The notes: a model not told the origin generated them from the sequence alone. DNA of 64,000 bases from Hyaloraphidium curvatum SAG 235-1 (GCA_025558095.1 JAIVFI010000022.1:620001-684000), one strand, 5' to 3'; positions 11,801 to 63,047 are shown, counted from the first letter of the stretch. A program made the numbers and translations.

Positions 11801-14800
11801 TTCTTGGCCGCTACCACCAGCGCGGCCTCGTCGGGGCTCTGCGCGCGGTAGTGCAGAGGCCCGGCGGGTTCCGCAGACGGGCCCTCGGCGCCCTCGACGA
11901 CCTGCGCCGGCATGCCGTCCGGCGTGCTCACGAGGACCGAGTGGCAGACGGCCAGCAGCGTGAAAAACTCCATGATGAGCACGCTCTGCGGCGCCGTCGA
12001 GGTCGGCGCCTCCAGGTCCTGGTACAGCTTGGGATCGACGAAGCCCGGCGCAGCATCCCGGTAAGCCGAAGGGAACTGGGCCGGCACCTGGTACATCTCG
12101 TGGCCAGCATCGGGCGCGGGCGACGGCGACGGGCTCGGGCTCGCACGCGGGATCTGCGGCGTCATCGACGGGGTCGCGGGCAGCGGCGGGAGCGCCTCCG
12201 CAGCCTGCCCGTGGTTCCTGATCGACGCCGACGACCGCGCCGGCGACGGCCTCCTCGGCGCGGGGTACTGCATGCTCGCCGACGACCGGTGCCGCTCCGA
12301 GGTGGGCAGCATCGCCGGCTGCGGGCTTGCCGGCTCCCACCCGCCGTTGACGCCGAGCCCGACGGCCGACACCGACGCCCGCGGCATCGACGAGACCGAC
12401 TTGCGCGGGTCGGTCGACATCCGCCGCAGCGACAGGTTGGCCTGCGCCTGCGACTGGCTTTTGCGCGGCGCGCCGGGTGGGGGCTCCCCGAGCCCGGCAT
12501 AGAGCGTCCCGGCGATGGTGCACTTTTTGAACTCCATCACGTTGCGCGTCAGCGTCCCCGTCTTGTCCGAAAAGACGTACTCGATCTGGCCCAGGTCGTC
12601 CGACAGGTTCCACGCGCGGGGGATGCAGGGCCGGTCCATGGGCTCGTAGTACATCTCCACGTCCTGGTAGATGAAGAAGGCCTGCGCCGTCTTGACGATC
12701 TCGACGGTCAGGTACAGCGATATGGGCACGATGTTCTGGTACTGGATCAGGGCGTTGAGGAAGGCGATCAGGCCGTCGGTGAAGCCGGTGCCCGCGGCCT
12801 GGGCCAGGTAGGGCGGGTTCTCCGCCAGGTGCGCGGCCTCCCAGATGGGGTTGGCGACGGCGACGACGATGCAGATGCAGGCGAGGATGAAGAGGTTGAC
12901 GAGCCTGTAGGTTCAACAAGCGGGGCCTTCTGTCAACAAACGGAGAAGCTGACCCAGCCGCTCGAGACCTACACGTGGTAGTTCATCATCTTCTCGATCG
13001 CGCTCCTCTTGCTTGGCGTCTTTCCCGAGTTCATGACGACCTTGGTCTCGGACCCCGTGAACACCACGAACCCGATCGCCCACTCCGTGTCCCTGAGAAC
13101 CGACCCGCGCAGCAAGAGGTTGCCCGCGTTCACGGGGAGGATCTTCAGATGGAGCACGCCGTCCGAGGCGGCCGTACCCGTCTGGGGGGCCGAGGCGATG
13201 CTGGGCGCGACGCTGGGGAGGGAGGTGGCCGAGGTGCCCGGGGTCACGGCCGACAGCGGGGGGTTGGGGGGCGGCGCGGGTTGGAAGCGCGCCGAGGCGG
13301 CGGTGGGGGGTTCGACGGAGGTGCTTTGGGCCGAGCCGGGGGAAACGGGCGGCAGGGCGGCGAGAAGCGAGGCGGGGTCCGGGCCGTTCTGCGCCGGCAC
13401 CGCGAGGCCCGAAAGCTCCACGGGGGTCTGGGCCAGCGGACTCTCGGGGGCCTCCTCGACCGTCTCGAGCTGCGCGACGAAGCTCGACTTGCCGAAGCTC
13501 GCCCAGCTCCCGCCGTCCGTCTTCTTCCTCAGCGACCTGCGGCCGGGGCTGCTGACCGGCAGCCGCTGGTCCCGCCCGCCTTCGGCCACCAGGGTGCCGG
13601 AGAAGGAGTACATGTTGGCGTTGGCCTCCTCGCTCTCGACCCAGAAGCGGGCGTCGGCGCAGTCCAGGGCCGTCCGAAGGTGCTGCGTCGACGGGACCGA
13701 GTACCGGATCTTGAGGTTGGTCTCGCCGTCCAAGTTCTTGGTCTCGAGGTAGGCCACCGATTCGGGTTCCGAGGAGGAGAGGAGCAGCAGGTCCGCGGGC
13801 ACCGAGTCGCCCTCACGCAGCAGGAGAAAGTCGCCGACCTTCACCTCGCTCCACTGCTTGATGGCAAAGTGCGGGTCGTCGGGGTCGTCCGGGGTGGGAG
13901 GGACGAATTTGGGCGCCGCGGCGACGGGTGAGGCCGGCCGGTCCGCGTTGCCCGAGAGCTTGCCCAGCTCTCCGCCAGTGACCTTGTCCGCGGCCGCCGT
14001 GAGCCACCGGTACAGCGACTTGATCAGCTTCACGACCAAGGCGGCCACGTACTCGATGGGCAGCATGATGTAGCCCAGGATCCGTTCCCACCAGCGCAGG
14101 AAGCGGTGCCAGAGGGCCTGCGACGGGGGCCGCACGTTGACGTTGTAGAAGTTGGCCAGGGCGTAGACCGGCGTCGAGTTGACCTTGTTGTCCGAGGCGT
14201 GCCGGCGGTAGTCCTCCAGGCCGTCCTTGATCATTGTCAGCGTGACCTGTCGAAGGCGCGGTTTAGCCGAGGTTCCGCAGACGGCCCGAGCGCGGGCAGG
14301 CGGACTGCCCCGGCCCGCGAAACACGCCGCCCTCCCGCGTGCCCCGCGAATGCTGGCCAAACTCACGATGATAATGAGCGGCAGCGCCGAAACCACCGGG
14401 TCAATTGTCATGAACACGGGGAAGAACTGGATCACGGCCAGCGTGAGGAAAAAGATGTTTGCCACGCGGCGGAACTGCTCCGAGAGGTTCTTCGGCACGA
14501 AGAGCAGCAGCGAGTACTTTGACGTGCGGATCTCGTTTGTGGGGTAGTCCGGCGTCTCGCCGGGCGCGGCGACCGAGGCGTAGACGGTGCGCGGGGCGGG
14601 CGCGTCGGGGTCGCTGTGGCCGGCATTCTTCCCCTTCTTCGCGGCCTTGCTGTTGAACACCGGCAGCCACGACCGCTGGATCGCCGCGGCGGCGGAGGCG
14701 GTCGACGGGCGGCCGTCCGCGCGCAGCCCGTCCTTCGCCGCGGTCGTCGACTTCGGCGGCGCGAGCGACGTCGCCGACCGCGCGCCGGCGAACGGGTTCA

Positions 14801-14822
14801 GCGCCGCCTGCGCGTCGGTCAT
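8820..14822 (-). CDS. P4-type ATPase (phospholipid flippase, Dnf/Drs2 family)
   Basis: NEIRTSKYS, EQFRRVAN, ETKNLDGETNLK, PISLYLTVE, phosphorylation motif DKTGTLT, SPDEAAL, TGDKMETA, CCRVSPLQKA, GDGANDVSM, GHWNYRR. Multi-exon. Confidence 0.95.
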
Positions 14823-15461
14823 CTCAGCGCGTCTTCCGCCGCTGCGCCGGCCCGCGCCATGGCCCCGCCGACCGAGCGGGGCTGTTTTGAGGAGCGGATC
14901 GTCGAGCGCGCGACCGCCGACCGAGCACCCCCAAGCACCCTGCGCCTGCGCACAGCCCGGTCTGCAGGACTGCAGATCTGGATCTGCGGCTGATTCAGTG
15001 ATAATGTCGATTGCTTTCCTCAATGATTGCGGGGTGGATCGCTAGCCTTGTGGGAGCTCTGAGCTGGAATCGAAGCTCGCCTGAGCGATTGCCCGCAGCC
15101 CCCCAGGAGGACCAATACAAGGTTCTGGAGCCTTCACTCGACGTTGGATGTCATGCGGAATCACTCCTAACAAGATCGCCAAGCTGGAGATCGCCCAAGG
15201 TCTGCTTCCCAGTCTGCCCCAGAGTCCGCAGCCCGTCAAATCAGAGCCAAGAGGTGTTCCATACCGCGATCGGATCGGAACCGAGACCATAAGTGACTTT
15301 AAATGTTGTATACGGGAATCCGGAAGAAATTTGGCAAGTGGGGCGTGTACGGGGGATTGGGTGATTGGCCACTGCAAGCACGTCTCGAGCATCGTGCGGG
15401 GACCAACTCGTGCTCCACTCGGGCTGCCGTGTTGTCGGTTCATTCACCGCAGCCGACCATC

Positions 15462-20693: not shown

Positions 20694-23317
20694 CTACAGC
20701 TTCGGTCCGCTCGTGCTTCCCGTCCGCCTGCCGCTGGCGTCCCTCGTTGGGTCGCCCTTGAACCTGAAGCCAGCGATCCCTGAGCAACAGGACCGACATG
20801 ATCACGCATTCAACCCACCCAAGGTTCGTGAAGGCCCTAGTAGCACCGGAAGCCGGCGGCGCCTCGGCGCCAGTGACGAACTGGGTGACCTCCTGCCACC
20901 TGTCGCGCACGGCTTCGACGTTGAAGCTCGAGTCCAGCTTGAAGAAGGCGCCGGCGGACCGCTGCAGGCGGGTCTCGGCGACCCAGCCGCCGCCGACCTC
21001 GAAAAGGTGGTGCGGCATGGTGTCGCTTTCGTGGCAGAGGTAGACGACGAGGGGAGAGATCCACTGCGACGGAGGTCAGCCGAGCACTAAATGCCAGCAG
21101 TATCTAGCTCACGTCGGGCTTGCGGGCCTCGACGTACTTGGGGTCAACGCCAGGGATCGTGGCGATCATGCTACAAACATGATCAGGCGCATGTTGGAAA
21201 GACGTAAGCGGGCTCTTACCGAGTGCCGGCGCCGGGGGCGATAGTGTGGCAGACGATGTTGTCCTTCGCGCCCTCCTTCGAGAGCGTCTGGGCGAAACCG
21301 ACGGTACCGAGCTTAGCAGCTGGAAGCGGGAAGAATGAGATGCGGCTCGGAAGGCTCCAAACGAGACCCCGCACCGGCGTAGTTGGCCTGCCCGAAGTTG
21401 CCGAAGATGCCCGACGAGGAGGCGGTGAAGACGATACGGCCGTACTTCTGGTTCTTCATGTGAGGCCAAGCCGCCTTGGTCGTCTTGTAGATGCCCCTCA
21501 GGTGCACGTCCATGATCGAGTTCCAGTCCTCGTCCGTCATCCGCGCCAGCGTTTTGTCGCGGAGGAAGCCGGCGTTGTTGACGAGCACGTCCACGCGGCC
21601 GAAGGCCTTGATCGCCGTCTGCGGGGTGATGGCCCTGAGTGTCAACCATCCACGTGAGGCGCAGAGTTTGCCGCACCTCAATGATCTTCTCGCCCTCAAG
21701 CACCGAGTCGTAGTTGGCGACAGCCGTGCCGCCTTCCTTCCGGATTTCCTCGACGGTGGCGTCGGCGGCACCAGAAGACTTGCCAGCGCCGTTGACGGCG
21801 GTGCCAAGGTCGTTGACGACCACCTTGGCCCCAAGTTTGGCGAAATACTTGGCGTGGGCCTTGCCGATACCGTTGCCCTGAAAAGAGCGATTAGAGGGAT
21901 CGCGAGCGACGTCGCCAACAAACATACAGCGCCCGTGACGACGACGACCCGTCCATCGTACCGCAGGTCGGGGATCGAAGGGTTGCCGGGGAGCTTGACC
22001 GAGTCCTCCATCTTCTTCTGGAAGTTGGCCTCGGCGCCCGCGACGGGGTAGTCCGCGTTCGTGAAGTCCATGATCTGGGGCATCTTTTCCTTGATGAGAG
22101 CCGCGGTGTAGTTGACGTTGGGGTTCAGCAGCACGCCCTTGGTCCTCTGCCAGCGGAGCTTGGCCATCCAACCGGCGCCGACCTCGAAGAGCGACCCGTT
22201 CTCCTTGGTGGAGGAGTGGCAGAGGTACGCAACCAGGGGAACGACGTATTCCGGCTTCACGGCCTCGAGCAGCTCCTTGGGCCACACGGTGGCGGTCAAA
22301 CGCGAACCGGCGATGGGAGCGATCGTGTTGGTGTGGATGTTGTTCTTGGCGCCCTCCTTGGCCAGGGTCTCCGAGAAACCGTGCAGACCAAACTTGGCAG
22401 CTAAAGGATGACAGCACATGAGCCGAAATCTCCACCGCCGGTGCGGTGACCGTACCAGCGTAGTTGGACTGCCCGAAGCTTCCGTAGATGCCGCTTGCCG
22501 ACGAAGTGTTGATGATCCGGCCGTACTTCTGCTTTTGCATCACCTGCCAGGCCGCGCGGGCGACCTTGAACGCGCCGTCGAGGTGAACCTTCTGAATCAG
22601 CTGTGGGCCGAAAGAGGGACAGGTTCGGACTCGTGATCGTCGAACAGCGCCAGTCAGGAACCCACGTCCCAGTCCTCGTCGGACACTGGAAACGGTACAC
22701 ATTGAGCGGGCACGAGGAAGGCAGCGACAGGGAAACTCACTCCTCTGGAACGATTTGTCGCGGAGGATGCCGGCGTTCTGGGAGACGGTTCGACGGGTGA
22801 GGCCAAATCGACGCGAGCATCCTCCGACGGTCCCACATTGATCACCACATCCACCCTGCCGAAAGCTTTGACCGCGGTGTCGATGATCCTATGGGGAACA
22901 ACAGCCTCGTCAGGGCTGGCGTCGCGGTCTCCTTCGTGCCGGGATGTACCTCTCCCCGAACTCGACTGAGTCGTAGTTGGCCACGGCCTTGCCACCGGCC
23001 TTGGTGATCTCGTCGACGACGGCATCAGCGGCGCGCTGGTCCTTGCCCTGGCCGAAGCCAGAGCCACCGAGGTCGTTGACAACCACGGACGCTCCGCGCG
23101 AGGCGAAGAACAGGGCGTAGGCCTTCCCGAGACCGTTGCCCTGATGTTGGAAATAATGTGGGCGATGAAGGCAATGCCGTTCGCCGCAGATGGGCGCGTC
23201 GGAAGGGAGGTCGGGCGCGGAGCGGTGAGTCGGCTGCGGGACCGACGGGCTCGGGCGACGGGGACCCACGGCGCCGGTCACGACGACGGTCTGTCCGTCC
23301 CAACGGAGCTGGCTCAT
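20694..23317 (-). CDS. Fox2/MFE-2-like double dehydrogenase without hydratase domain, copy 2 (tandem duplicate)
   Basis: Same exon structure and near-identical protein to 17883-20501. Starts [16 protein letters not shown], ends [11 protein letters not shown]. Confidence 0.88.
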
Positions 23318-48960: not shown

Positions 48961-51326
48961 ATGGCGGCGTGGGAGGCGGCGCTCTCAGGGGAGGACGGCG
49001 AGGACGGCTACGACTGGCAGGCGCTGGTCGTGCGTGCGGTGGCGGGGCACGGGGCGGCGGCGGTGGCGGCGGCGTTGGCGGCGCCGGCCGACGGGACGCC
49101 CTCGGCGCGGGCGGGCTCCGATGGCCCGGGCGGGGGCTCCGATGGCCTCGGCGGCGGTCTCAGCGGGGACGGCGTGCGGTGGGCGCTGTCGCCGCTGGCG
49201 CTGGAGCGGGCGGCCCTGTCGCAGAAGGAGGGCGGCGACGCCGACGACGACGGCTCGGAGACCTCGGCCGGCGACCTGGCGACCGGCGGATCCGAGGCGA
49301 ACCTGACGCTGGTCTCGGCACACTCGGGCCACTCGGCGCACTCGGGCGACTCGGCGCACTCGGCGCCGCCCGCCCCCGGCTACGGCAGGCGGCCGACCCC
49401 GCACGCCCTGCACGCCGCCACGGCCCTCCCGAACATCAAGGGCGGCTCGGACTCGCTGCTCGAGTTCCTGGTCAGGAGCTCGTCGGGCGTGCCCCCTGCC
49501 GCCCGGGCGGCCGCCGCCCACCTCGCCCTGCAGACCGCCGTGCGCCGCTCCCGCCCCCTCGAACCGCGCAGCCTGATCCCCCCGCCGGACCTGGGCCCCG
49601 GCGCGCCCCCCATCTCCGAGCTGCTGGACATGGCCGTCGAGGCGCAGTGGGCCCTCGCCCACCCCGTCTACCCGATCCTGCACCGCCCCTCGTTCGAGCG
49701 CGCCATGCGCGGGCTGCCCTCGTGCTACCCGCGCCGCCCGCTCGCCCTCCTGTACGCCGTCGCGGCCATCGGCGCCCGCGGGCTGCCGGTCCCGGAGCCG
49801 CAGCGCAACATCTTTGCCCGGTGGTGCTGCGACCGCGCCCGCGAGACGCTGCTGGACCGCGACCCCGGGGACCTGGAGGCCGCGCAGGCGCTGCTGGGCC
49901 TGGCCAACGTGCTCATCGTCGCCGGCGTGCCGCAGCGGCTGTACCCGCTGATCGTGCGGCTGGTGCGGTCCAGCGAGCACCTGGCGAGGACGGTGGAGCC
50001 CGGGTTCCCGTCGACGCCGGACGCGTGGATCAGGAGGGAGCTCGTCCTCCGCCTGCGCATCTTCGTCTCGTGCGTCGACCTCGCCGTCGCCAAGCACTCG
50101 GGGCGCCCGGTGATGGGCTCGTACTTCCACCAGCACGCGTGGCCCGCGCCGGCGTCGGAGCACTTTTTCGACGACCCGGACACCGAAGGGGCGCACGCGC
50201 TGCTTTCCGAGCTCGTGGCAAAGCGGGGCGAGCCCACGGTGCAGTTTGGACGCAGGGGGTGGGCGGCGGCCTCGGCGGCCGTGCGCGCGCTGGCCGGCTC
50301 CCCGTTTGGCGGCGGCGCCTCGGTCCTGTGCCTGATGCACCTGGCCAACTACGTCCGCTTCCTGCACATCTCCGCCTCCCCCCCTCCCCCTCCCCCTCCC
50401 GGTGGCCCCCCTCCCGCCGGCCCACCTCCCCCGGGCGCACCCCCCGCCCGTCCCGACCCCGCGAAAGCCCGCAACCTCGCCGCCTTCGTCTCCACCCTCT
50501 CCGACCTCGTCCTCACCTCGCTGCCACCCGACATCGGCGGCCCCCTCTCCCGCGGCGACGCCGCGCCGCTCTTCTCCCTCGGCGCCCGCTACTTCCCGCA
50601 CCCCGCGCACCCCTTCACCGCAGCGCAGTCCCTGCTGTTCGCCGAGGCCCACGCGGCCGAGGGCTTCATGCACGCGGGGTTCCCGTCGTCGGCGCTGGCG
50701 CGCTGCGGCCGCATCGCCGGGATCCTCTCGGCGTGCCTCTCCCGCGACCCCGAGATGCGCTGGGCGCACCACGTCGTCCTGCCGCCGCTGTACACCGTGG
50801 GGAGGATCACCCTGGGCGCGCTGGCGGGAATGCGCACGAGCCCGGCGTTCGAGGGGGACAGGGAGCGCGGGGAGAGGGAAGGGCGGATCGCGGAGGCGGA
50901 GGGGTGGGTGAGGCTCGTCGGGGTGTGCCTGGGAAGGATGGGGAGGATATACGGGCTGCTGCGTGGGTTCTCCCGCCTGCTTCCACGCGGGTGGCGCACT
51001 GACCTGCAGGGTTCCCAGCGAGGAAGCTCGCGCAGCTGTTTGCAAAGGACATGCGCGACGCCGGCGTGCAGCCCGACCCGCAACCTGCCGCACGCCACGC
51101 GGCGACGGAGGACGACGGCGAGACGGTGGAGATACCGGACGAACCCGAGCACGCCGAGGAGGACAGGGGCGAGGCGAAGTTCTTCATGGACGTGGCGCTG
51201 TCCTCGGCCGGCGGCGCGCTGCCGGGGTTGCGGAGGACCGGGACGGGGTCGGATGTGGGGAGCGTGGGGTCGGATGCGGTCGGTGGGGATGGGAGGGAGG
51301 GGAGGAGGGCGAGGGGGAGGGGGTGA
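48961..51326 (+). CDS. Fungal-specific transcription factor middle-domain protein, paralog 1
   Basis: HPVYPILHRPSF, LLYAVAAIGAR, WIRRELVLRLRIF...D. One intron near 50963-51018 gives YGLL-PRKLAQLF. Confidence 0.72.
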
Positions 51327-51496
51327 GGTTGCGGGCGGAGCGGGAGGCGCCGGGAAGGCCGTGGACCTATGTCTGGACAAAGGAATTGAGGCGCCTTCCC
51401 AAATCGAGATTATGCATCCCTCGTGATACAATGCGGATCGACGTGCGAATTAAATACGGGGACGCGCTGCAACTCGGGCGTCCGACCAACCCGTGT

Positions 51497-57576: not shown

Positions 57577-58170
57577 TCCGGGACCTCCGCGGTGCGCGCC
57601 CGGCTCGGGGCGAGCAACCTGGACCGCGGGTTTTGCGGGTCGTCGTTCTTGTGCGACGGATGCGGGCTGCCCGGCGGACCGAAACACCAGGGGTGTCTTT
57701 CACGACAGCTCAATCCGGTCGACCCAAAGGGAATCGCCAGATCCGATTATGATTTATGCTGAAAAGCAGCGGATGCACTGGGAGGCTTTCACGGGGTTTC
57801 CCGCCCCGGATGCCCTGCGTCCACGTCCACCTTTCGGGCAACACTTGGAAGGCATCTCGCCGGGCACCCATCCAGATCCCGCGCCATCACTGCAGCTCTG
57901 ACCACTCCGGTCTCGTAGTCGCGAACCTTGCCACTCGGGTGGTTCCGGCGGCGGCCCCGCGTTTGCCGCCCGGCCGCAACCGGCCACGGTGAATCGGACC
58001 CTTCGACGGCAGAAAACGGCCGTCCACAGGAGGGCCGCGCCCGGCCGAATCCCACCCGCCGGCGATGTTGCGAAGGCCTTGAATCTCCCGACCGTTTCCC
58101 GCCCCCCGCTGGGTGCGCGAGGGCGACGCTGGGTCGGTGCGGCTCCGTGCGGCGCAACCCCCCGCGGGCG

Positions 58171-60173
58171 ATGGGCGAGCGGACGGCGCCGTCGGGCGAC
58201 GATGACCGATTGCTGATCGCCCTCGCCGCGGGGCTGCGGGTTTCGGCCGACGCTGCGGACGCCGGGAGGGGCGGGGCACGCAGCGGGGGAGGCGCCTCGG
58301 ACGGAGGCAGCGACGCCGCGTGGTCGGATGCCCCGCCAGACGGCGATGGAGAGCCGGAAGCGCAGCTGGCCAAACGGCCGCCACACCCGCGGCCAACGAG
58401 CCTGCTGGACTCGGGCTGGAGCGGGTATTCGGCCTCCCTCCCCCCGGAGGCGGCCGCCCCTGCCTCGGACCCCTGGCGGGCGGCCTTTGGCGCGGGAGGC
58501 GGGCTGCCGAGGCCGATGCGGACGTTTCCAGCCCCATCGCCGGCCGCAGACGTCGCCCCGCTCAGCGCACCGGCTCCCCCCTCCGAGCTGCTCTTCCCGG
58601 CCATCGCCCGCTTCTTCGAGGTGTTCCACCCGCTGTTCCCCGTGGTGCACAAAGCCACCTTCGAGGCCTCGCTCGCCGGGCAGCCCTCACCGGTGTACGC
58701 CGGCACCCGCCCGCTGGCCCTGGCCTACGCCGCCGCGGCAGTCGGGGCGTTCCACCTCCCCGCCGAGCCCGAGCAGGCGCGGGTGCGGTTCGCCAGGCTG
58801 TGCTGCGACCGCGCGCGGGACCTGCTCCTCGCCGGCCGCGCGTCGCCCGTCGAGGAGGCCTTCGCGCTGGCCCTCATTCTGAACGTGATGCTGGTCGCGG
58901 GCGTCCCGGGGAGGATGGCCCACCCCTTGCAGAGGTGCGGCCGGCTGGCGGAGGCGCTCTACCTCTCCCTCCCCGAGGAACCCCCCTCCACCCCCGACGA
59001 GTGGGTGTACAGGGAGCAGGTCCTCCGCCTCCGGATATTCTACTGCGCCTTCGACCTCGGCGCAGCCTTCAACGCCGGCCGTCCGGCGCTGTCGAGCTAC
59101 TTCCACCCGCACCGCAGCCCGCTCCCGTGCGGAGAGGCCTTCTTCGACCACCCCTTCCCCGGCGCCGCGTTCGACGCCCTCACCTCCTGGAGGGAGTCCG
59201 AAGGAGGCGAGCCGTGCGTGCGGTACCCGGCCAAGGACTGGCGTGAGATCTCGGGCACCTTCTCCCACCTCTCCTCCCTCTCGGCCTCGCCCTCGGGCAG
59301 CGTGCTCTGCGCCCTCATGCTCTCCAACTACGTCCGCCACCTCCGCATGGCCCTCGGCCGCTCCGACGCCTCCTCCCCGCTGAACGACCGCCGCACCGCC
59401 GCCGGCGGGCTGGTAGGCGCATGCGACGCCGCGCTCCGCGCGCTCCCCCCGGATCTCGGCACCGCCCTGTCGCAGGGCGACCCCGCACCCCTCCTCCGCT
59501 CCCGGGGCTTCGCCGACCCCGCGCATGCCTACTCGCTCCTGCACTCGCACCTCTTCTCCGAGGTCCACGTGGCCGACCGCCTCCACGCCGCCGGCTTCCG
59601 CGCCTCCTGCGCCGCGCGGCACCTCCGCCTCGCGCGGTGCCTCGAACAGCTGCTGCGCGCGGATCCGCCGGGGGACAGGTGCCACCACGTGCTGATGGCC
59701 CCCGCGTACGTCGCGGGGAGGTACCTGCTCGCGGATCTGGTCGGGGAGGAGCCGCGCGGGCCGGACGAGGGGGGCGAGGGGCGGGAGAGGAGGAGGAGGG
59801 AGCTGGGGAGGGGGGTGCGGGCCGTGGGGAGGTTCTTGGAGAGGCTGGGGAGGGTGTACGGGCTCCAGCGTGGGTTTTCGTCGTGCGGCGGGGGTTCCGT
59901 ATTGTTCTGACCCCGGGTGACGTTGCAGCGCGCAAGGTGGCGAGGGCGTTCGCCGGGGACGTCGCGGCCGCGGGTTTCGGGCCCGGCGGTCCCGCGCCGC
60001 TGCCCGAGGACTCGAGCGACCTGCAGGAGGACGACGGGGGGTTCGTGCCCGGGCCGCCCGAGGGCGGGGAGGAGGCGAGGTTCTTTGGGGACGTGCTGCT
60101 TTCGGGCAAGGTGAGGTGGGAGTCGTTTGCGGCGGGCAAGGGCGGACCGGGGTCTCCGGGGAGCCTGGGTTAG
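58171..60173 (+). CDS. Fungal-specific transcription factor middle-domain protein, paralog 2
   Basis: RFFEVFHPLFPVVHKATF, LAYAAAAVGA, WVYREQVLRLRIF...D. Intron at the same codon position as paralog 1 (YGLQ-PRKVARAF). Confidence 0.75.
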
Positions 60174-60476: not shown

Positions 60477-61852
60477 ATGACCGCCCGAATACCGGCCTCC
60501 CGGCGCCGCCGGGTCATCTCCCTCTTGTACTTGTGCCTGCTGCTCGTTCTCGGGCTGGGGGCGGGGGGGGCGGCGGCAGGGTCCCCCCGACCCCGCCGGC
60601 TCCCCGCCGACAACACCGCGCCGGTGGCCCCTCCCCTGCCCCGCCAGGCCGGCAACGACAGCGCCCCCGCCTGCCTCGTCGACGCCGTCGCCCTCTCCGT
60701 CGCTGGCTTTTCCTTCGCCGCCCGCACCGCCACCGCCGAGCTCCGCGTCCTCGCCGTGTGCTCGTCGCAGATGGGCGTGACCGACGTGCTCCGCCTCGTG
60801 GGCCCGCAGGGCGACGGCAGCGTGCAGGTCTCGGCCCAGGGCGGCGCGCCGTTGCCCGCCGAGGCGCAGGCGCAGCTGCCGGGGATGGTGTGGATGGCCG
60901 CGGCGCAGTACCGCGCCGACGTGCGGGCGCGGTTCGAGCTAAAGTACTACCCGTTCGATCGGATAAGGGTGCCGGTGGCGCTCGAGGCGACCAAGCCGTG
61001 GGGGGACATGGAGGTGCGGTTCGGGCTGCTGGACGCCAACCCCGGGTCGAGGATCGGCAACGGGTTCTTCACGGACGAGGCGCTGATGCTCCAGGGCCTT
61101 CCCATCGTGGTGGCGGGGAACTTTGGCTACGTTCCGGACTCGTTCGGCGCCCAGGCGCCCGAGTTTGCGCGGTTCACGTTCGAGTACGAGTTCCGGAGGG
61201 ACGACGTGACGACGTTCGTGCAGGTCATGCTGGCGAGCTACCTGGCCTTCATGCTCAGCGTGTCGTCGCTGGCGCTGCCGGTGGAGGAGCACTTTGACTC
61301 GCGGATGGGGATCCTGGGCGCAAGGTGGGCCGCGGCAGCGCCGGGACGCTTCGGCGAAACTCACGCCTCCACAGCATCTTCGTCGTCGTCCTCACCATGT
61401 CGGCCCTCTCGACCTTCCTCGGCTACCCCGCCACCATGACCCTGGGGGACTACATAACCCTCTCGACGCTCTTCCTCATCGGCCTCATCTTTGTCGAGAG
61501 CATCTGCGAAAAGTGGCTCGTGCTGCACCGCCGGGCCAAGGAGGACGACGCCGAGGCGCTCCACAGGGCTTTCGGCAACGGCGCCGAGGACGTGGACGGT
61601 GCTGACAAGGCCGCGGCCGAGGGCACCAACGGCGCCCTGCGTCACCGCGGCCCGCGTGCGCCCGCGGGTGCAGGGGTCGAGATGCCCGTGGTCGACGCGC
61701 CCCCGCGCCGCTCGGTGTTCTGCTTCGGCGCGTGCCCGCGGCCCAAGGGGGCCGAGTGGATGTCGCTGTGGACCGCGGTGACAGTGAGCATTGCGTACGT
61801 CGGGATCAACGTCGGGCTGCTCGTCGGGTACAGGGCGCCGCCGGGGGGCTGA
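60477..61852 (+). CDS. Pentameric ligand-gated ion channel subunit (Cys-less, Pro-loop type)
   Basis: Signal peptide; beta-rich ectodomain with FELKYYPFD Pro-loop; pre-M1 EFRR; four TM helices (M1 FVQVMLASYLAFMLSVSSLAL, M2 RMGILGASIFVVVLTMSAL, loop P..MTLGD, M3, M4). A 50-nt GT-AG intron at 61325-61374 restores the frame within M2. Confidence 0.8.
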
Positions 61853-63047
61853 GATGGTCGGAGGGATCGGTTAGGCTGTCGCGTGCCGGGCTTCGATGCA
61901 ATGCGTCGCGCTGCCTCGGCAGACCGTTTTCGCGGCCGGCCGGCCGTACCGGTCGCGGCCCCGAGGGCCCCGCCTGGCTGCCGCTGGGTCTCCGGGCTGT
62001 GTCGATGTCCCCCTGTTCCCGGTCCACGCCCCCGCAGTAGGACGCCGCCCCACGTCCTGCGGGAGGGCCCCATCCTGACGACGTGCGCGCAGTGTACGGT
62101 GTGCGGGCCGTTTTCGGGGATTCGAGGGGAGCGCAACGCCGCTAGATAGAACGTTGGCTGGGCAGGGAGCGACGTCACAGGCCGGGACGGTCGGTTCGGC
62201 ATGTCGGATTCGGCGAGGTGTCGAGTGGAAAGAGGCATGTCGGACGTCGGAGCAGCGGTGGTCATCCCCAAAAGGGAACTGGATCGCAAGGGTCGGTGGG
62301 ACGCTCCGGTCCGCAAGGGCCCCGCACCCCGGCGGGTCGGAAACACTTCCGACGGGGAACAGTCCGCTCGGGTCGATTCGAGCGGCTGTTGGTGCGGAAC
62401 GGCGCGCCGGATGCGCGGGGAAAGCGGCCGACGGACCCGAGGGTAGTGAGGCCGAGGGATACAGCGCCACCCGGGGTCCGGGGCGGCAACCGGTGCCGAG
62501 GGGCAGACCAAGCGGCCCGATGTTCGAGTTCTTTGGACCGGCCATTCGGAGCGCACGGGGTGGCCGGGAAATGCGGGGGAGGGGAGCGGTCGATGTGGCG
62601 CCATCGAGTCATAGGAAGGGACGGGGGTGAGTGCGGGTGCCCAATCGCCCTGGAGGCGGGAATGGCGGCGATGTCGGACGATTCGATCATGCCGAATGTG
62701 ATGTCTCCCGCCATCTGCAGCGCCCGGCGGCCGCCGGCGGCCGTGCGGCGGCCGAGGGACGGGTCGCGAATCGGGAGGGCGGACGGTCGGGGTCCAGACC
62801 GCGCACCGGCCCTGTGACTCGACGCGCACGGGGGCCGCCGGGAGGGGACATCCGGGCCGTGCGAGGGGCGCGGCGACTTGAGGAGGGGGCCGGATGAGCC
62901 TGCCCGTGCGTCAAGGTAGCGCAGGAGGCGTCGGATGAAAATTCGCGCGAGGTTCGAAGCGGCCCGAAAAAAAGATCGAGCGTCCCGGCCGCCGACCGCC
63001 CTCGTCGACCGGCGAAATCGCGACCACTCACACCAGCGCCCGCAGAC

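Follow-up and report, generated by a model that had tools for sequence, protein, structure and literature searches.

The stretch of DNA analysed here, hereafter called the window, comprises 64,000 nucleotides of Hyaloraphidium curvatum SAG 235-1 (GCA_025558095.1 JAIVFI010000022.1:620001-684000), an early-diverging, chytrid-related fungus that belongs to the Monoblepharomycota and not to the Dikarya. At 60477-61852 lies a gene that an earlier note, made from the sequence alone, had described as an intron-containing, Cys-less pLGIC, or pentameric ligand-gated ion channel. With considerable confidence, we regard the locus as an intact, spliced H. curvatum gene for a very divergent Cys-less subunit of the pLGIC superfamily. 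Its architecture is that of a standard pLGIC subunit and represents no new kind of machine. The parts of the gene and of the encoded protein, including the four membrane helices M1 to M4, are as follows (window coordinates).

60477-61852, forward strand: whole gene, two exons, ATG at 60477, TGA at 61850-61852, 441 codons
60477-61324, forward strand: exon 1, residues 1-282 and two bases of the Ser283 codon, covering a signal-like N-terminus, the extracellular domain, M1 and the initial third of M2
61325-61374, forward strand: intron of 50 nucleotides, GT..AG, phase 2, within M2 between positions 6' and 7'
61375-61852, forward strand: exon 2, remainder of M2, M2-M3 loop, M3, cytoplasmic loop of 77 residues, M4 and TGA
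60477-60581, forward strand: putative signal peptide, residues 1-35, with an Arg-rich start, a Leu-rich core and a Gly/Ala end (hydropathy segment 10-37)
60654-61190, forward strand: extracellular domain rich in beta strands, spanning about residues 60-238 and including the conserved Cys66 and Cys95, from family alignments
60945-60959, forward strand: Pro-loop YYPFD, residues 157-161, without flanking Cys
61191-61205, forward strand: pre-M1 segment FRRDD, read from the sequence
61197-61199, forward strand: pre-M1 Arg241, matching the canonical pLGIC pre-M1 Arg in the hhalign and hidden Markov model (HMM)-versus-PDB alignments
61209-61277, forward strand: M1 helix, with Ala253 at the site of the M1 proline of relatives and canonical pLGICs
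61293-61420, forward strand: M2 pore helix and cytoplasmic mouth, split by the intron, with Asp274 at -2', Arg276 at 0', Phe285 at 9' and Leu289 at 13'
61421-61450, forward strand: M2-M3 loop GYPATMTLGD, aligned to the LP..Y..T.D loop of the canonical copies
61451-61525, forward strand: M3 helix, containing F(V)ES with its conserved Glu
61526-61756, forward strand: M3-M4 loop, 77 residues, low complexity, weak conservation
61757-61831, forward strand: M4 helix, followed by a conserved GYR motif

A hydropathy scan yielded the same hydrophobic segments, including the four helices. Cysteines occur at residues 20, 66, 95, 327, 399 and 403; none lies between residues 95 and 327, so the strict Cys-loop disulfide (two Cys 13 residues apart) is absent and the protein is of the Cys-less type. 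The Pro and Asp of the Pro-loop are invariant across the family of relatives described below and conform to the pattern [FY]-P-x-D, with YYPFD aligned on FPFD of canonical pLGICs and on YFPMD of an insect GABA receptor. The pre-M1 Arg expected of the superfamily is present as Arg241. M2 reads FDSRMGILGA-S-IFVVVL, the isolated serine marking the splice junction, and was numbered with Arg276 as 0' in the register obtained by aligning 'aRmGiLGA' to 'eRlGl' and 'aRvalG'. In this register, the helix has a basic residue at 0', a hydrophobic 9' gate and a Pro in the M2-M3 loop, the gate residue being Phe and not the usual Leu. The residue-level observations of the earlier note all hold, namely the signal-like N-terminus, YPFD without flanking Cys, the pre-M1 Arg, the four helices and the M2-M3 pattern, and so do the oddities it listed (Ala253 in place of an M1 proline; Asp at -2' and Phe at 9' with Arg as 0'; an M3-M4 loop put at about 70 residues and here measured at 77).

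The same note had placed a spliceosomal intron inside M2, and comparison with paralogues together with the G+C content at third codon positions (GC3) indicates that this intron is genuine. It carries CTCAC 10 nucleotides upstream of the AG and splits the Ser283 codon as AG/C. In a paralogue on contig C23, the identical AG/C serine codon is interrupted, in the same phase, by a 52-nucleotide GT..AG intron whose branch site reads GCTAAC, and the GenBank model of this paralogue crosses the junction as GILGASIFVVVLN. The paralogue on contig C3 lacks the intron; there, as in relatives from other organisms, GILGAS(I/V)FVVVLN is uninterrupted. GC3 is 0.94 in the exon 1 frame and 0.92 in the exon 2 frame, against 0.56 in the frame read through past the intron start, where the GC peak shifts to a different codon position; this displacement of the coding frame is precisely the one expected from splicing. 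Full-length relatives can be aligned with the two exons over their entire extent, far beyond chance, exon 1 matching positions 5-221 of the family profile and exon 2 positions 222-395 (expectation value E 1.7e-45).

The relatives are few. An exhaustive phmmer search with the exon 1 domain against 1.84 billion cluster representatives returned only 11 proteins, namely the gene itself, two H. curvatum 'hypothetical proteins' and eight sequences from Logan assemblies and metagenomes, with no bacterial or archaeal protein among them. A word-indexed homologue search (exon 1, alignment A1) gave only the query's own protein and two already-known proteins, and a single-sequence phmmer search of the exon 1 domain against PDB sequences gave only a chance match to ribosomal protein L3 (E 0.36).

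It is on the comparison of profiles that we consider the window protein homologous to the pLGIC superfamily. A family alignment of 14 sequences (A2) was compared by hhalign with an alignment of eight canonical channels from the same fungus (A3), giving a probability of 95% and a P value of 3.9e-8 over 192 columns that begin at the Pro-loop, extend through M3 and keep the canonical register. The paired columns include YYPFD with FPFD, the two pre-M1 Arg, LP with LP in M1, 'aRmGILGA' with 'eRlGl', 'T.gD' with 'T.lD' in the M2-M3 loop, and the M3 Glu with its counterpart. Decoys (two reversed and 20 column-shuffled) scored 10-19 with P of 0.2-0.97. Exon 1 of the window gene alone matched the canonical profile at P 8.6e-4 with its register unchanged. 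When the family profile was searched against PDB sequences, an insect GABA receptor came first (E 0.039, aligned from Cys-loop to M4) and pLGICs made up 12 of the 20 matches listed, and a language-model feature search likewise points to Neur_chan_LBD clusters. With this P value, the fold of a paralogue and the motifs in register, the earlier assignment to a Cys-less subunit of the superfamily is borne out.

A full-length structure was modelled for the intronless paralogue P0004 of the same genome, using AlphaFold2 with the 14-sequence, family-only alignment. The model has a predicted local distance difference test (pLDDT) score of about 85-90 outside the M3-M4 loop and consists of ten to twelve strands and, after them, four long helices, the extracellular region forming a beta sandwich at pLDDT 82-94 and the equivalent of the M3-M4 loop being disordered (pLDDT ~30). 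A Foldseek search of this model against the PDB gave at least 500 matches at E ≤ 0.001, and all among the matches listed are pLGICs (best E 1.8e-14). VIA-align placed it on pLGICs at Z ~22, superposing 280-300 residues between model positions 5 and 437 at a root-mean-square deviation (rmsd) of 3.0-3.3 Å. Among the ESM Atlas matches listed, the nearest were prokaryotic clusters with a template modelling (TM) score of up to 0.83; Neur_chan families are assigned to three of the six listed, and the other three lack a common Pfam family. The beta sandwich and M1-M4 of a pLGIC subunit are thus both present in the P0004 model, with which the window protein aligns over its full length and shares the hydropathy helices. 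A two-copy complex prediction for the window extracellular domain, run without the family alignment, scored 0.00 and speaks neither for nor against assembly.

The genome holds three to four copies of the divergent family, located on contigs C3, C22 (the window gene) and C23, with a shortened remnant on C11. The C3 paralogue ends with the exact C-terminus of H. curvatum KAI9032210.1 in GenBank. The copy at C11:572948-573546 (reverse strand) keeps only profile positions 4-86, 249-284 and 341-402 and looks like a truncated or degenerate paralogue. The C23 paralogue (C23:484627-486085, reverse strand) corresponds to KAI9016126.1 (P0005), a model of 1114 residues in which it is fused to a Peptidase_S58 protein. 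That model omits the pre-M1 segment and part of the M2-M3 loop, the DNA does encode the missing pre-M1/M1 piece (TYLSQVPQFDRVTIVFELARDDTTNFVQ...), and KAI9016126.1 is probably a gene-model fusion or mis-splice.

Five of seven foreign phmmer matches were traced to contigs, three of them to one sequencing run. The assembly of that run, SRR26194948, contains three members of the divergent family (P0002, P0003 and P0006) and one canonical pLGIC; one further locus lies in SRR23967301 and one on an ENA lake-type metagenome scaffold. Galactokinase and a tetratricopeptide repeat (TPR) protein of the SRR26194948 organism share 65% and 68% identity with their H. curvatum counterparts, and the organism is probably another member of the Hyaloraphidium lineage. 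The TPR gene adjoins a channel gene in both, P0004 in H. curvatum and P0003 in the SRR26194948 organism, and these two are therefore taken as orthologues; no synteny was found between P0002 and either the window locus or the C23 locus. A tree on the exon 1 columns shows three clades and places the window copy on a long branch with P0006 and P0008, all three lacking the C-terminal Cys pair. From the tree and the orthologue pair it follows that the paralogues are older than the split of these organisms, since when they have been retained. The hallmarks of the family are the N-terminal Cys pair, Asp at -2' and Phe at 9'. To judge from these alignments, the window copy evolves fastest within the family, the M1 proline and a number of conserved tryptophans (WEGW, TVWD) having been lost, and it may therefore be a specialised or heteromer-only subunit.

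The divergent genes are not the only pLGICs of this fungus. The Pfam models find about ten canonical genes (E 1e-24 to 1e-14), four on contig C6, two each on C1 and C37 and one each on C39 and C4, some of them in head-to-head pairs. The loci detected by Pfam are as follows.

C6:45168-46004, forward strand: canonical pLGIC
C6:47131-47961, forward strand: canonical pLGIC
C6:861776-862591, reverse strand, with C6:863219-864055, forward strand: canonical pLGIC pair
C1:280041-280802, reverse strand, with C1:281617-282360, forward strand: canonical pLGIC pair
C39:459632-460393, reverse strand: canonical pLGIC
C37:166117-166948, reverse strand, with C37:167882-168935, forward strand: canonical pLGIC pair
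C4:70162-70371, reverse strand: canonical pLGIC

These copies are likewise Cys-less, with FPFD not flanked by Cys. Four of them (P0014-P0017) carry the GenBank name 'neurotransmitter-gated ion-channel ligand-binding domain-containing protein', and one C6 gene has 100% identity with a named protein of H. curvatum; the divergent clade is annotated as 'hypothetical protein'. A survey published in 2016 (Jaiteh et al., PMC4795631), which predates the H. curvatum genome, found no pLGICs in Fungi and reported Cys-less pLGICs to be common in unicellular eukaryotes, and our literature search found no paper reporting pLGICs in fungi. The earlier statement that such channels are absent from fungi thus agrees with the published view, but the GenBank labels of the four canonical copies mean that the presence of pLGICs in H. 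curvatum was already on the database record. What is new is a divergent clade member of a known superfamily, the labelled canonical copies being already known.

Compared with these canonical pLGICs, the window gene is alike in architecture and in the lack of Cys-loop cysteines, and the FPFD/YPFD motif, the pre-M1 Arg, the M1 LP, the 'RxG' start of M2, the M2-M3 T.D and the M3 Glu all align with the divergent family. Identity is only ~17%, however, the introns lie at other places, and the canonical copies pass Pfam where the divergent family fails. The canonical M2 has Glu at -1', Thr at 6' and Leu at 9', whereas the divergent family has Asp at -2', Ala at 6' and Phe at 9'. The bacterial channels GLIC (Gloeobacter) and ELIC (Dickeya) are, like the window protein, Cys-less Pro-loop receptors and give the best target-normalised overlap with the P0004 model (TM 0.65-0.69, rmsd 3.5-5.9 Å) at 12-17% identity. 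The P0004 model has no N-terminal helix and neither does GLIC, which is also acidic at -2' (Glu). The window protein differs from the two bacterial channels in its putative signal peptide, its intron, its conserved N-terminal Cys pair and Phe 9', and the M3-M4 loop of GLIC and ELIC is much shorter than its 77 residues. The animal anionic Cys-loop receptors (glycine, GABA-A/RDL and GluCl) have the highest structural Z with the P0004 model (~22) and also a long M3-M4 loop, and an RDL-type GABA receptor is the best sequence-profile match (E 0.039); unlike them, the window protein has neither the Cys-loop disulfide nor the Pro-Ala-Arg anion filter, and it is invisible to the Pfam models built on them. 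The Cys-less pLGICs of unicellular eukaryotes (PMC4795631) are similarly eukaryotic and patchy in distribution, but the divergent family comes from a fungus and has diverged much further than anything that such HMM-based surveys recover.

If the protein works in the manner of GLIC, ELIC and the GABA-A and glycine receptors, a ring of five subunits, of this protein alone or together with its paralogues, would enclose a pore with M2 as its lining. A small molecule or a proton might bind on the extracellular side between neighbouring beta-sandwich domains, and the Pro-loop, the pre-M1 Arg and the M2-M3 loop would then relay this event so that a hydrophobic gate, formed by Phe 9' and Leu 13', opens. 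Asp at -2', comparable to the Glu of GLIC, hints at cation permeation. A role of the putative channel in fast chemosensing, as suggested by the earlier note, is conceivable. Tentatively, and with slightly less than even confidence, we propose that the Hyaloraphidium lineage keeps an ordinary Cys-less set and, beside it, a Pfam-invisible clade, that this second clade forms working ionotropic receptors for an environmental ligand, and that fungi did not lose pLGICs entirely.

Several results weigh against the assignment of the window gene to this superfamily. The HMM search against PF02931 and PF02932 that the earlier note had recommended failed: neither exon matches any Pfam model at E ≤ 10, these two included, and none of ten relatives matches them at E ≤ 1, so the homology is visible only through profile-profile comparison and fold. 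The same models do detect the ten or so canonical genes of this genome. Exon 2 compared alone with canonical pLGICs gives a P value of 0.064, which is not significant although the register is the same. The M1 proline is missing from the window copy, which reads MLASY where relatives read MLPTY, all full-length relatives having (L/S)P(T/S) aligned to the canonical LP. The window copy is also the most divergent member, on the longest branch and 25-34% identical to every relative. The full-length fold belongs to P0004, which is 28-31% identical to the window protein, and an AlphaFold2 run on window exon 1 alone, with no alignment, was unusable (pLDDT 41). Furthermore, AlphaFold knows the pLGIC fold well and may be biased toward it; the sequence statistics, which are independent of the model, lead in the same direction.

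The same divergence could mean that the gene derives from a pLGIC and no longer makes a channel by itself, being a decaying paralogue, a subunit dependent on the C3 or C23 copies, or a protein with some other role. The long branch and low identity, the change of the M1 Pro to Ala, the loss of the WEGW and TVWD tryptophans and of the C-terminal Cys pair, and the shortened C11 copy as a case of family decay in this genome would all suit such a fate. We nevertheless think it unlikely, given that the reading frame of 441 codons is unbroken and its intron correctly placed, that GC3 of 0.92-0.94 is as expected of a gene still translated and under codon bias, and that the window copy has kept RMGILGA/FVVVL in M2, the M2-M3 loop and the GYR motif as well as the Pro, Asp and Cys that are invariant in the family; the C-terminal Cys pair, moreover, is also missing from P0006 and P0008, the relatives that group with the window copy. 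That YPFD and a four-helix topology should have arisen by chance in an unrelated membrane protein can be given next to no weight. The lack of any Pfam match and of a relevant hit in the single-sequence PDB search might be read in this way, but this reading is already contradicted by a P of 3.9e-8 in the profile-profile comparison, where the decoys stayed clean, by five landmark motifs in register and by a structural Z of 22 over both domains.

The earlier note favoured a domesticated, prokaryote-like channel, which would imply a recent horizontal acquisition of a prokaryote-type gene by the fungus. The protein is indeed Cys-less as are GLIC and ELIC, and the P0004 model has its best target-normalised TM scores with these two and with bacterial Atlas clusters. 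Such an origin is nonetheless very improbable. The 11 phmmer matches include nothing bacterial or archaeal, and three of those traced come from an organism whose proteins show 65-68% identity to their H. curvatum counterparts, with shared synteny. An intron, paralogues and a long M3-M4 loop in the eukaryotic style also speak against it, and Cys-less pLGICs are frequent among unicellular eukaryotes (PMC4795631). Within the genome itself, the canonical Cys-less set stands beside the three to four divergent paralogues, and the picture of a lone domesticated gene is therefore unsupported. An intact fungal gene for a very divergent Cys-less pLGIC subunit is the reading that we retain.

We attach moderate weight to this result, as it concerns a gene in a kingdom said to lack pLGICs and one missed by standard domain models. 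The H. curvatum genome contradicts the statement that there are none in Fungi (PMC4795631) twice, with about ten canonical genes and with a much more divergent clade, and the choice between ancestral retention in opisthokonts with massive loss in fungi and a later acquisition becomes a testable question. If the second clade forms working receptors in this non-motile planktonic fungus, fast ligand-gated signalling would extend to the fungal kingdom; if the second clade is indeed pLGIC and invisible to Pfam, HMM-based surveys would undercount the superfamily. The family alignment lends itself to profile searches for hidden pLGICs in protists and in other early-diverging fungi. For work on gating, the unusual pore, with Phe 9', Asp -2' and, in the window copy, an M1 proline replaced by Ala, amounts to a natural experiment.

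The surroundings of the gene agree with the fungal-type genome and fungal neighbours reported in the earlier note. Two open reading frames (ORFs) on the forward strand, at 57928-59910 and 48961-51426, carry the fungal-specific transcription factor domain PF04082 (Fungal_trans), and one of the two is the channel gene's direct upstream neighbour. Bacterial contamination was considered and rejected in view of the intron, the Fungal_trans neighbours and the contig of 706 kb in a 31.9-Mb assembly of 55 contigs. A tRNA scan of the window found none. Elsewhere in the window, on the reverse strand, lie two ordinary eukaryotic genes, the N-terminal part of a phospholipid-translocating P4-ATPase (12969-15023) and a short-chain dehydrogenase fragment (21104-22702). 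The G+C content rises from ~0.62 in the first half of the window to 0.70-0.75 in its last 16 kb, and long spurious ORFs are frequent on both strands of this GC-rich end, for example at 61642-62829 on the reverse strand, overlapping the 3' end of the channel gene.
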